Shown one piece after another: positions 21,104 through 25,858 of a stretch of 64,000 nucleotides of DNA. The translations under genes and the position numbers were made by a program. Origin of the DNA: Blepharisma stoltei ATCC 30299 (Eukaryota > Protista > Ciliophora); contig CBFDEM010000004.1 of assembly GCA_965603825.1 (NCBI GenBank), forward strand, positions 620,001 through 684,000, given 5' to 3'. Below the pieces are notes generated by a model. The model searched no databases. It worked only from the letters and a program-made list of their open reading frames with translations, and was not told where the DNA came from. Each line of letters opens with the position of its first letter. The stretch's first letter is position 1.

Positions 21104-22177
21104 CTAAAATACTATGCATTTCGACTTCTTTTTTTTTTCAGTTTTCACTGGGACGTTTTTAATGTTTCTTTCTTCTTCGTCTTTTCCAGGCTCCCTAGTA
21201 GGGCTTGTGTCTCTTTTTGCTGGCTCTTTTGTTTCTTCTTCTACCTTTTTACGCTTTCTCATGCCATTAAAATTGACTAAAGTCCAATCGAAAAGATAAT
21301 CATATTCATATGATTCTCTTATGAATAAATCTTTGAATATTCTCCTTAAGTAGCCATAATCTGGTCTGTCTTCAAATTTTAATCCTCGGCAATAATTTAT
21401 ATACGCGACGAACTCTGGAGGAAAGCTGCGACATAAAGTTTCAACGGGAGTATTCATTTTTCTTTCCATAATCCTTCTATATTTTTCTTGCTTCGAATTT
21501 GCAGCAATGCCTTGCCATGGAAGAGATCCTCTCAAAAAGTATGCAAGGACGTATCCTATTCCTTCCATATCGTCTCTTCTGCTTTGTTCAATCCCCATAT
21601 GTGTGTTGATAGATGTATATCTTGCTGTTCCAGTCAAGGATTTCCCTTCAATATAAGGGATGTGCTTATGCGTTTTAGGGTCTCTATATTTCTTCCCGAG
21701 TCCAAAATCAATGATATGTATTAGTGTGCTTCTTTTCCCTGTTCCAATTAAGAAGTTTTCTGGCTTAATATCTCGATGCAAAAAATTTTTAGAATGAACA
21801 TATTCAACTCTACATATTAATTGCTCAGCGACCATCAATACTGTTTTCAATGTTAGTTTTCTATTGCAGCAATTAAACAGATCTTCAAGACTAGGACCTA
21901 ATAAATCCATCACCATCACATTAAAGCCGTCTTCTATGCCATATCAATGGACTCGAGGAAGGCCTGGCCCTCCTTGCAAAATTCTGATAATTTTAGATTC
22001 ATAGAGAAGCTGGGGATGCCGAGAATTTACATTTTCAATTTTTATTGCAACTTCTTCATTTGTTTGGAGATTGCAGCCAAGGAAAATTTCGCCAAATGAG
22101 CCACTTCCAATTTTTTTCTTGATTTGAAATTTATTATCGATTTGAAAATCGCCCTGAACCCCGATTTTCTTTGACAT
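21104..22177 (-). CDS. Casein kinase 1 with polybasic CaaX tail ([11 protein letters not shown])
   Basis: [19 protein letters not shown][W at TGA21944][33 protein letters not shown]. Confidence 0.97.
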
Positions 22178-22995: not shown

Positions 22996-24345
22996 ATGGA
23001 TCAAACCTCACTAACCAGGCTATTGCAACTAAAAACTGAATATAGTTTTGAAGAGATATCTAAAAAACCTATTTTTCGTATTTTTTCTACCAGAAATGAG
23101 CCTTATTTATACCAATCCATGTCAAGAAGTGAATCACTTTCTTTTATTGACAACACAAAAATTCTAGAATTGATTGGTACTGGTTATGGACAAAAAGTCG
23201 GGTTTAATGATAACAGCAAAACCTGGTTTGTTGAGCTTTGGATCAATAAAATTGTAGTTAAAATCTGGAAAAGCCCTGATCGTGAATGAGGAGAATTGAT
23301 ACAGCCAGTAGATAATGGATCAACGACTGAAAGATGGAATTATTTACCATATGAGCAGGAATATGAAATGTTTCATTTGAGTCCTGAAAATGATTATGGA
23401 TTTAAGTGTGGGAAAAATAATGACTGTGAATGAAAAGAAATATGGCATACCAGGCCAACAAGTAAATTTTTAGAAAAATATTGGATTTCTCCAAATAGTA
23501 AATGGGGAGAAAAAGAAGGAAAAGAAGATGACAGGACTTGGGGTGAGAAATGGTACGAAAACTATGACTCCAGAGAATCTTCATCCTGGAATGAGCAAAA
23601 TGAAAGAAAATGGGGCAGAGTGGAAGGAAAGCAAGGAAACACTACCTGAAATGAAGAGTGGTCTATTGAACCTGAAAGAAAATTCAATAACAAATGATGG
23701 GCAGATGGAATAAAAAAATGGGGTATAAAATCAATAATAGAAGGAATATCAGAAACTCATGAAGAATGGGAAGAAATAGGGACTTCTAGGAAGTTTAAGA
23801 TTACAAAAGATGATGGATTTGGACATAAATCAATAATTACCGAGGGATATGGAGATGAGTATAAGTTTAAAGATGAATTCACAGAAGATGTTAGCACTGG
23901 TGAAATGATGACACAAAAGCAAGGGTATAGCAACAAAAGAACATGAAGCAGCATAATAAAACAGTCTCGGGGGAAGTTTTATGTTCATCATATAGGCCAA
24001 GACGCGAACTCTTCTTGGGAAGAAACCTGAAATGAAGAACCAGGATTCAAATGGGCCAGGAAAAAAGGAAGTAGTCCAGAATGAGGATCATGAGAAGAAT
24101 ACTGAAAAGAAACCTCAGACACCAAAGAATGCAAGAAATGGGGCAAAAATGGTGAAGAATGATTTGAAGAGTGAAAAGAAGACTCAACCAACAAATATTG
24201 CAGAAAAGAACAAAGAAAGCATGGCAAAATTTATATCCAAGAATGAAAAGAAATCTATAAAGATGAAAAAATGATCACAAAGGGCTGCTTCCTTGAAGAT
24301 GGAATTCCAGTAAAAGAGTGGGACGACATCGTTATCCTTTCATAA
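22996..24345 (+). CDS. Tryptophan-rich repeat protein (449 aa), ESV1/LESV-like
   Basis: Continuous frame ATG22996-TAA24345 with 12 TGA and 19 TGG codons. Periodic WxExW and KWG motifs, in which TGA and TGG alternate at equivalent positions. Confidence 0.85.
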
Positions 24346-24408
24346 TTTTAAATTCCTCTAAACCAATAAGGCTTAAGGAGGCTAAGCTATTTTTATTATA
24401 AAAATTAT

Positions 24409-25221
24409 ATGAATGGAAAATTTGAGATGAATTTAGGAAAATCCCAAAAGAAGTATGGGCTAATAAAAACAAAAAATGTGTTTAAAGTTGAAGAAAACGA
24501 TGAAGAAGATGCAATAAAGGCAGCAAATTTAGATATTGTTAAAGAAAGTCTTATGAGACAGCAAAAATCTGATGAAGCTTTATATAGGGCTTTGGCTGAA
24601 GATCCAACGATAATTTCATATGATAAGTTTTACGAGAGTTTTAAAGACAAGCCAGAGCAAAAAGATGTAGAAAAAAAGCCTAAATATTTAGATGCTATTA
24701 AGGCAGCTAATGAATTCAGAAAAAAAGAAAAAAATTTGATAAAAGAAAGAGTTGAAGCTAAAAAAAGAGAAAAAGAAGCCAAAGAACTAGGCGAAACTGA
24801 GACTTTTATTACTCCAAGCTACATAAAGTTTTTGCAGGAAAATAATCAATGGGCAGCAGATCTTGAGAAAAAAGATGAGAGATCAGAAATGCATAGCGTC
24901 AGCAATTCAAATGGAGATATCCGCAACTTTTATGCAAATTTACTTACTAAAAATTCTGCAATGGGGAATAAAAGTGAGCCAGAGCCCCGAAAAATACAAA
25001 AAATTGAAGAAGTTGAGAAAAGCTCGAGTGAGTCAGAAGAGGTTGAAATGCCTGAAGAACCTCCTAAAGCAGCAGAAGAGGATACAGAAAATAATATCAA
25101 TCAAGAATCAACTCCAGAGCCTCTACCAGAGAAAAAAGGTGAAAAAGATATACAGTCTGCACGAGAGCGGTTCCTTCTACGAAAAGCCCAATCTAATAAT
25201 AGCTCTAATATGCTAAAATAA
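24409..25221 (+). CDS. Nuclear speckle splicing regulator NSRP1/CCDC55-like (DUF2040)
   Basis: KKYGL, ALAEDPTIISYDKFY, KPKYLDAI, ETFITPSYIK, SARERFLLRK. Confidence 0.85.
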   Translation: MNGKFEMNLGKSQKKYGLIKTKNVFKVEENDEEDAIKAANLDIVKESLMRQQKSDEALYRALAEDPTIISYDKFYESFKDKPEQKDVEKKPKYLDAIKAANEFRKKEKNLIKERVEAKKREKEAKELGETETFITPSYIKFLQENNQWAADLEKKDERSEMHSVSNSNGDIRNFYANLLTKNSAMGNKSEPEPRKIQKIEEVEKSSSESEEVEMPEEPPKAAEEDTENNINQESTPEPLPEKKGEKDIQSARERFLLRKAQSNNSSNMLK

Positions 25222-25222
25222 A

Positions 25223-25765
25223 ATGGAAATCACTCCAGAATATGTAGTTCAGCTGACTGAAGCAACCCCGAATTTTTTGTGCCCACTTTCAGCTAATACA
25301 TACGGCATTGAGTTTGTTTATTTTAAAGTGAGGGACTTGGAGTCAGGCATGGTCCTTTTTGAAGTCCAAAGCGAAGGAGAAACTGCATCAACTGAGCCAG
25401 CAATCGATGATGACCAAGTAAGGACTGTAAAATATCATCTTGGACCTGATTTCTTGAAGCTGAGAGCACTTGGAAGTACTATTGAATTTACAGTGGGTCC
25501 TAAAGAAGTGAGGAACTTCCGAATGATAGAAAGGCATTATTTCAGAAATACACTTCTTAAAAACTTTGATTTTACTTTAGATTTTTGCATCCCAAATACA
25601 AGGAACTCTTGGGAAGTTATTTATGAAATTCCAGAACTGCCAGAAGACTTGCTCCAGCAAATGATTGATAACCCTTGGGAAACTAAATCAGATAGCTTTT
25701 ACTTTGTGCAAGACCAACTTATTATGCACAACAAGGCAGAATATAATTACTCCCCATTAATTTAA
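25223..25765 (+). CDS. UNC119: UNC119 myristoyl-cargo carrier
   Basis: FLCPLSANTYGIEF, FRMIERHYF, FCIPNTRNSWE, SDSFYFV..LIMHNKAEY. Confidence 0.95.
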   Translation: MEITPEYVVQLTEATPNFLCPLSANTYGIEFVYFKVRDLESGMVLFEVQSEGETASTEPAIDDDQVRTVKYHLGPDFLKLRALGSTIEFTVGPKEVRNFRMIERHYFRNTLLKNFDFTLDFCIPNTRNSWEVIYEIPELPEDLLQQMIDNPWETKSDSFYFVQDQLIMHNKAEYNYSPLI

Positions 25766-25858
25766 GCAAGCTTTGAATAATAGAATTGTAATAAACAGAT
25801 TGAAAATATTGATATTTAATTGATTTATGCATTAAAGGCAAAATACTGATTTTCGTTA

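Follow-up and report, generated by a model that had tools for sequence, protein, structure and literature searches.

Introduction

To our knowledge, ESV1 and LESV are the only non-enzymatic proteins known to drive and stabilise the transition of amylopectin from the soluble to the crystalline state, and they have been studied in plants only. The ESV1/LESV domain, as published, comprises ~250 amino acids (aa) arranged in 16 twisted antiparallel strands, and the published models carry aromatic and acidic stripes ~14 Å apart on both faces, which were proposed to bind amylopectin double helices; published alignments show the motifs WWETW, WYEKWWEKYD, WTEKGAHKYG, WWEKWGEHYD, WTDKW and WGDKW. The present analysis concerns a gene at positions 22996 to 24345 of the forward strand of a 64,000-nucleotide stretch of Blepharisma stoltei ATCC 30299 (GenBank assembly GCA_965603825.1, contig CBFDEM010000004.1, positions 620,001 to 684,000). 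This whole stretch is referred to as the window, and its numbering is used below unless another locus is named. The 449-aa, Trp-rich product is predicted to form an extended antiparallel beta-meander of the ESV1/LESV design, and we give an even chance to its being an ESV1/LESV-like, cytosolic and non-enzymatic binder or organiser of amylopectin-type glucan.

Paraglycogen granules occur in Blepharisma (PMC2107414), and the available text of a 2026 preprint states that ciliates storing paraglycogen (amylopectin) have glucan-water dikinase (GWD) as well as ESV/LESV, both of which were lost in Paramecium and Tetrahymena (10.64898/2026.09.25.754361). Ordered storage polysaccharide in a heterotrich, which a preliminary description of the locus had offered as an implication, is therefore already on record in these two sources; the protein itself is already annotated, and ESV/LESV in ciliates is already claimed in the preprint. 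The literature surveyed does not describe the predicted sheet of 35 strands, the combination of two domains, the fusions to giant proteins, or explicit tests of this kind against genuine ESV/LESV.

Gene structure and genetic code

By codon scan, one frame of 450 codons runs through the gene (22996 to 24345, forward strand) from an ATG start to a TAA stop, containing 12 in-frame TGA codons and no TAA or TAG before the terminal TAA; each of the five alternative frames of the same interval contains 8–22 TAA or TAG codons. The TGA codons span 23287 to 24246 (first bases at 23287, 23431, 23647, 23695, 23944, 24028, 24082, 24091, 24103, 24160, 24172 and 24244), and with UGA read as Trp the 449-aa product contains 31 Trp (19 TGG and 12 TGA), 61 Glu, 53 Lys and 34 Gly, and is sparse in Leu (15), Val (10) and Ala (3). 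UGA was assigned to Trp because a paralog has TGG at nine of the TGA sites of this gene, and 11 of these 12 sites are Trp in orthologs. The preliminary description had presented the locus as one 449-aa Trp-rich repeat protein, hidden by its TGA codons and liable to be missed by annotation; the single protein was borne out by the frame scan, the paralog and the orthologs, and it turned out not to be hidden, its exact table-4 translation being present in the public protein collection (P0039). The coding sequence is complete and free of introns, as seen from the single frame, the identity with P0039, the contigs described below, and a paralog alignment that is gapless inside.

Contigs of four runs from one study (X1, 23006–24315; X2, 23062–24382; X3, 23055–24315; X4, 23006–24253; all forward strand) cover the gene from 23006 to 24315 or 24382, with no joint and one difference only. 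The runs were labelled RNA by guess only, and were judged RNA-like because contigs over the gene end at gene borders with flank depth of ~0, depth differs up to 100-fold between adjacent genes in the same runs, and one adjacent contig terminates in an A run. The four runs thus behave like RNA, and transcript-like contigs of the gene span all 12 TGA codons, in agreement with the transcript that the preliminary description implied.

The paralog (L005:1819-3174, minus strand; C53) encodes 451 aa, is 74% identical with all 31 of 31 Trp conserved, and aligns without internal gaps, the length differing only in the last few C-terminal residues. In the paralog, nine of the gene's TGA codons read TGG and the remaining three are likewise TGA; the other two of the paralog's five TGA codons are TGG in the gene; the ratio of nonsynonymous to synonymous substitution rates (dN/dS) is 0.08, at a dS of ~1.8. 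The neighbours of the paralog are a PDE6D/UNC119-like open reading frame (ORF) and a TBC-domain ORF, both identified by eye only, so that the paralog is not a tandem copy. In ten orthologs (34–48% identical), Trp occupies 11 of the 12 TGA sites, and a gene with 35 TGG and no TGA is among them. Searches of the whole library with a hidden Markov model (HMM), and twice with word-indexed profiles, brought up about a dozen full-length orthologs of 446–455 aa, all from metagenomes, Logan or transcriptomes; B. japonicum contributes a fragment of 68% identity. Of the clusters of related proteins with listed members, species names are given for Blepharisma alone, B. stoltei among them. The gene is a real, functional nuclear gene of a heterotrich ciliate that reads UGA as Trp; it is under selection, transcribed, and a member of a conserved family.

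Predicted fold and Trp stripes

Structure prediction was carried out with AlphaFold2, using a 36-row alignment with P0039 as the head row, producing a model with a mean predicted local distance difference test score (pLDDT) of 94.9 and a predicted template modelling score of 0.75. Assignment by DSSP placed helices at residues 3–32 only, followed by 35 consecutive strands through residue 447, with strands ~10 residues long and turns mostly of two residues. The model thus describes, with high confidence, an extended antiparallel beta-meander of ~35 strands, which would in effect be a single-layer sheet nearly without a hydrophobic core.

Three segments are distinguished along the chain. The N-terminal helical segment (residues 3–32, 23002 to 23091, forward strand) consists of three predicted short helices, and is conserved in the N termini of giant paralogs. 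The first part of the meander (residues 37–261, strands 1–20, 23104 to 23778, forward strand) carries a 36-aa, three-strand WxExW/W/KWG repeat and, by the model, the family alignment and HMM search, corresponds to a domain common to the N termini of giant coiled-coil proteins. The second part (residues 262–447, strands 21–35, 23779 to 24336, forward strand) is the region closest to ESV1/LESV, as described below, and from about residue 340 a WxExW strand and a K/G-rich strand take turns in a ~24-aa unit.

The positions of all nine motifs given in the preliminary description were recomputed and found exact: TTERW (23323), WKEIW (23431), WGEKW (23539), WNEEW (23647) and THEEW (23755) follow one another at 36 aa, and WEETW (24016), WEEYW (24091), WFEEW (24160) and YIQEW (24232) at 25, 23 and 24 aa. 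Autocorrelation of Trp at lag 36 gave z = 6.9 (residues 71–262, 2000 shuffles), and was weaker in the C-terminal half (lag 25, z = 2.7). Since a strand plus its turn amounts to 12 residues in the model, the 36-aa spacing corresponds to three strands and the ~24-aa spacing to two.

To place the side chains on the two faces, strands were set side by side under ideal hairpin pairing, giving an idealised map drawn from the strand assignment rather than from coordinates. Columns −2 and +2, on one face, hold 12 and 8 Trp, and columns −1 and +3, on the other, hold 5 and 4 Trp plus further aromatics; column 0, between −2 and +2, holds 12 acidic and 12 basic residues. WxExW strands put Trp at i and i+4, and a spacing of four residues along a strand is ~13–14 Å. 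The idealised map therefore suggests two Trp or aromatic stripes per face, ~13–14 Å apart, with a Glu/Lys stripe between them. The extended antiparallel sheet with Trp stripes that had been anticipated from the sequence thus agrees with the prediction, the sheet being seen in the AlphaFold2 model and the stripes suggested by the idealised map.

Relatives and domain architecture

The first ~260–280 residues of the protein recur as the N-terminal head of proteins of 630–2,900 aa, and seven genes of the B. stoltei genome carry this head domain. Giant coiled-coil/EF-hand proteins of B. stoltei (C47, C63 and C35) and of uncultured relatives (P0004, P0007, P0010 and P0015) are homologous over their first ~280 residues to residues 1–262 of the protein, with matches of the head-domain profile to the giant proteins of the genome reaching expect values (E) down to 1e-105. 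The giants differ in continuing into 1,000–2,600 aa of coiled coil followed by C-terminal EF-hands, and they are without the C-terminal half of the sheet. The C47 gene (L004:1427-9079, minus strand; G000:C47, ~486.4–494.1 kb) is an open frame of ~2,550 aa, in which a Trp-striped head is followed by coiled coil over ~2,000 aa and by EF-hands at the C terminus. Its Trp codons are 29 TGG and no TGA, compared with 12 TGA among 31 in the gene in the window, and this exclusive use of TGG may reflect the codon bias of a highly expressed gene.

The C-terminal half has relatives of its own. A family of 508–564 aa (P0050 and P0051–P0058) is homologous over residues 252–432 of the protein (hhalign probability 97.6%, E = 3.7e-12), with which it has WEExW and CKKWG motifs in common, and differs in an unrelated N-terminal half, the absence of the head domain, and more Cys. 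Its genes sit on contigs of 1.8–2.1 kb with 21% GC. One of these, L010:1-1846, is a complete 1.85-kb single-gene contig encoding P0053, with CCCCAAT repeats at one end and GGGGATT at the other (the GC value for the P0053 gene comes from its identical counterpart in L009). This contig looks telomere-capped, and the contigs of the family look like gene-sized ciliate chromosomes; record names, the only source for their origin, suggest rumen samples. A rumen origin is likewise suggested by record names for some of the uncultured ciliates that have relatives of the protein. Binding of the pigment blepharismin was considered as a role and dropped, as clear relatives occur in other, uncultured ciliates.

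The ortholog P0002 (L012:1-13350) lies on an 85-kb contig of a ciliate-like genome with very compact genes and spacers of 5–100 bp. Its gene has 48% GC and encodes Trp by TGG only; genes for tubulin, 14-3-3, an ODAD1-like protein and a kinase lie nearby.

Comparison with ESV1 and LESV

Genuine ESV1/LESV genes were drawn from metagenomes using a degenerate DNA pattern of 24 bases for K[W/Y]TDKWAE, which returned 118 stretches; of these, 76 were open frames rich in Trp, 80 aa or longer, that resemble ESV1/LESV genes, and both green-algal genes without introns and transcripts from plants were among them. Alignments were built for genuine ESV1/LESV domains (A7, 16–23 used), the family of the Blepharisma protein (A6), the 508-aa family (A8), and pooled ciliate C-domains (A9). 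A genuine ESV1 domain, also modelled with AlphaFold2 (pLDDT 93.8), shows 14 strands, which are 5–12 and mostly 10–12 residues long; W...W strands tend to take turns with G/K-rich strands, the same pattern as in the C-terminal half of the Blepharisma protein. In the PDB, the structural neighbours of the ESV1 model are OspA, porins, LptD and ApoB, generic classes to which those of the Blepharisma model also belong.

In design the two correspond closely. The Blepharisma protein, like the Trp-rich C-terminal domain of ESV1/LESV (PF28232), is rich in Trp, Glu/Asp, Lys and Gly, is without any other recognisable domain, interleaves W-x-E/D-x-W strands with G/K-rich strands, is predicted to form one extended antiparallel beta-meander, and, going by the idealised map, would present two aromatic stripes on both faces. 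ESV1/LESV are non-enzymatic, and the Blepharisma protein is likewise predicted to be so. Its motifs WKEIW, WGEKW, WNEEW, WEETW, WEEYW and WFEEW are of types found in the published ESV1/LESV alignments, as had been claimed from the sequence. It differs in the length of the predicted sheet (~35 strands in 410 aa, compared with 14–16 in ~250 aa), in tighter turns of two residues, in a strict 12-aa strand period with a three-strand repeat in the first half, in having more Lys and Ile and less Gly and Trp, and in helices that are N-terminal, those of ESV1/LESV following the sheet and covering one of its faces. The preliminary description had noted no signal or transit peptide; none is visible, the conserved family alignment beginning at Met1 with no N-terminal extension, so the product is predicted to be cytosolic.

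Kinship was examined by profile comparison, HMMER, and language-model features. Comparison of pooled ciliate C-domains with genuine ESV1/LESV by hhalign gave a score of 33.6, compared with 13.1 ± 2.3 for column shuffles (0 of 150 as high) and 20.4 ± 3.7 for shuffles of 12-column blocks (0 of 150). The ESV/LESV profile scored P0050 at 18.4 bits with the null2 bias correction on, a value that none of 500 shuffles attained, in an alignment collinear across ~145 positions of the model; the 508–564-aa family outscores the family of the Blepharisma protein against this profile. With null2 off, the latter family scored 60–75 bits, shuffles 18–32 and reversed sequences 41–60. Among ESM-Atlas features, clusters of LESV (PF28232) fill the top ranks, with scores of 0.88 for the whole protein (183/256 shared) and 0.90 for residues 262–449 (187/256), scores below 0.9 being rated by the Atlas tool as a lead only.

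Several results weigh against the ESV1/LESV-like reading. The hhalign probability was 1.6% for the family of the Blepharisma protein against genuine domains, and 40.8% (run locally) and 47.9% (official tool) for the pooled C-domains, over only 47–94 columns; HMMER scores of this family against the ESV/LESV profile were negative with null2 on. In an earlier set, 1 of 40 column shuffles came up to the real score, at 34.1, and shuffles without composition correction already scored 40–54, so much of the raw similarity is compositional. Run against the whole library, the HMM of the N-domain (a six-row alignment, of which HMMER used 118 columns) matched 29 proteins with no plant ESV1/LESV among them, and structure searches (Atlas, PDB and Foldseek/VIA) listed generic long sheets and barrels only, without LESV. 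The protein is without the C-terminal helices and transit peptide of ESV1/LESV, the stripes rest on an assumed ideal hairpin pairing rather than coordinates, and the fusion of the head to coiled-coil/EF-hand proteins of 1,300–2,900 aa suits a cytoskeletal role equally well.

The Pfam library searched does not contain PF28232, and genuine ESV/LESV domains were also unmatched in it, so that a negative from this library is silent on LESV; it returned nothing beyond chance-level, non-MORN matches for seven stop-free pieces, nothing at E ≤ 10 for P0002, P0005 and P0040, and a chance-level Tsr0524-like match only for P0039 (E = 0.066). No match was found in PDB sequences with the pieces, the C47 head or the family profile, nor with the ESV/LESV profile, which left no solved ESV1/LESV structure for comparison. 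The ESV/LESV profile found nothing in the B. stoltei genome, a weak negative since the related profile of the 508-aa family also finds nothing there.

Taken on sequence, the Blepharisma protein appears to combine the ESV1/LESV design with an order-dependent similarity beyond composition that falls short of accepted homology thresholds; the kinship that the preliminary description had suggested fell short of significance in profile comparisons (hhalign 1.6–48%, HMMER negative with bias correction). We therefore stop short of assigning the protein to ESV1/LESV, and describe the resemblance as one of design and possibly of distant homology. That it is nonetheless a true, highly diverged member by common descent, its sheet lengthened by duplication of strand triplets, and the 'ciliate ESV/LESV' of the preprint, is a reading about ancestry rather than function that overlaps with glucan binding, and we place it a little short of an even chance. 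It would account for the first rank of LESV among Atlas features, for P0050 and the pooled comparison scoring above their shuffles, for the 47.9% of the better pooled run, and for a chain in which the family of the protein reaches the 508-aa family at 97.6% and the latter reaches genuine domains at 27.7%; it also agrees with the absence of a canonical ESV/LESV from the genome in the search with the genuine-domain profile, and with the preprint's report of ESV/LESV in such ciliates. It is held back by the lack of any link to ESV/LESV at accepted thresholds, by periodic repeats that ease collinear alignment, by the weakness of that empty genome search, and by the available text of the preprint, which names no species or accessions from which its ESV/LESV could be identified with the present genes.

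Proposed function and alternatives

Since the published ESV1/LESV models share the stripe design, a glucan-ordering function is proposed. The product would be a cytosolic protein in which three short N-terminal helices precede an unbroken antiparallel meander of ~35 strands, with a surface design equal to that published for the face of plant ESV1/LESV that binds amylopectin double helices. Its most likely function would be the non-enzymatic binding, ordering or stabilising of the amylopectin-type alpha-glucan of paraglycogen granules, and the first 260 residues, as the head of giant coiled-coil/EF-hand proteins, would tether or organise the same ligand. Both the glucan ligand and common ancestry with ESV1/LESV are what we infer from the comparisons above.

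The presence of GWD is commonly taken to mark the metabolism of semi-crystalline alpha-glucan. Three loci with a C-terminal dikinase domain are present in the B. stoltei genome (L006, G000:C8:67353-70964; L007, on C54; and L008, on C35), all ending in a ...VVQSRPQV/I motif; L006 contains GWD1_pHisD (E = 5e-34) and PPDK_N domains, and matches plant glucan-water dikinase in the PDB at E = 9e-21.

If the proposal holds, this cytosolic counterpart of over twice the length, in a phagotroph that has no plastid but keeps glucan-water dikinases, would be an independent system in which to study the ordering of glucan helices by aromatic stripes, would bear on whether semi-crystalline glucan was made by the alveolate ancestor, and would make the giant coiled-coil fusions point to the anchoring of storage granules. 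A broader version, which we regard as a speculation with few chances of being right, is that the Trp-striped sheet may be a modular granule-binding head of alveolates storing amylopectin-type glucan, the free form templating or stabilising double helices like an elongated ESV1/LESV, and the giant fusions tethering paraglycogen granules to a Ca2+-responsive scaffold. Storage granules would then be organised and positioned by a system not described so far, and the ESV/LESV design would extend beyond plastid-bearing lineages.

The main rival to glucan binding is that the same Trp-striped single-layer sheet serves another ligand, as a cortical or cytoskeletal adaptor or a binder of membrane or lipid surfaces, with a likeness to ESV1/LESV that would be convergent, forced by the needs of a core-less sheet (Trp ladders and Glu/Lys pairs). 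We consider both the other ligand and the convergence unlikely, though far from negligible, since the stripe geometry (by the idealised map) and the motif repertoire match ESV1/LESV specifically, the similarity exceeds that of block-shuffled controls, LESV ranks first by language-model features, and GWD genes are present. Plant starch-granule proteins (PTST/MFP1) combine coiled coils with glucan-binding modules, which also counts against this rival. Were the ligand not a glucan, the sheet would still rank among the longest of its single-layer kind yet predicted, and the first part of the protein would still be the conserved head of giant ciliate scaffold proteins.

That the protein is a divergent array of MORN repeats, the alternative named in the preliminary description, is very improbable. 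Fold alone does not separate it from an ESV1-like protein, both being single-layer beta-hairpin meanders, and it is the motifs alone that do: WxExW and KWG are present rather than the 23-aa YxGxWxxGKxxGxG, and the period of the N-terminal half is three strands, not two; in addition, no match to the MORN Pfam entry (PF02493) was found at E ≤ 10 for four family members. MORN arrays, the G-box/TCP10 of CPAP and the central sheet of OspA all have other motifs, give no profile match, and form far shorter sheets without paired Trp stripes. A pseudogene or non-coding sequence interrupted by stops, suggested by the twelve TGA codons under the standard code, is refuted by TGA/TGG exchange at conserved Trp sites, the dN/dS of 0.08, full-length orthologs, transcript contigs and the high-confidence predicted fold, and is effectively excluded, as is the MORN array.

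Contig variants and neighbouring genes

The one difference among the contigs over the gene, G>A at 23547, occurs in contigs of two of the four runs and is synonymous (third base of Glu184, GAG>GAA), and is probably an allele or strain difference. In run X4, a contig of 1,641 nucleotides tracks the gene between 23006 and 24253, after which 255 of the further 393 letters in the record are unlike the window (CGCAATAGATATC...); chimeric assembly or use of an alternative 3′ end may explain this divergent tail.

The upstream neighbour (21104 to 21919, minus strand) encodes a protein-kinase fragment, and the downstream neighbour (24409 to 25221, forward strand) an NSRP1_N-domain protein. The flanking genes have no link to glucan metabolism, so functional clustering is absent at the locus. 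Further downstream, a short transcript-like contig at 25348 to 25780, which terminates at 25780 in nine loose A and has a depth of 400–600 compared with 5–80 in its neighbours, points to a small, very highly expressed gene within the ORF at 25223 to 25765.
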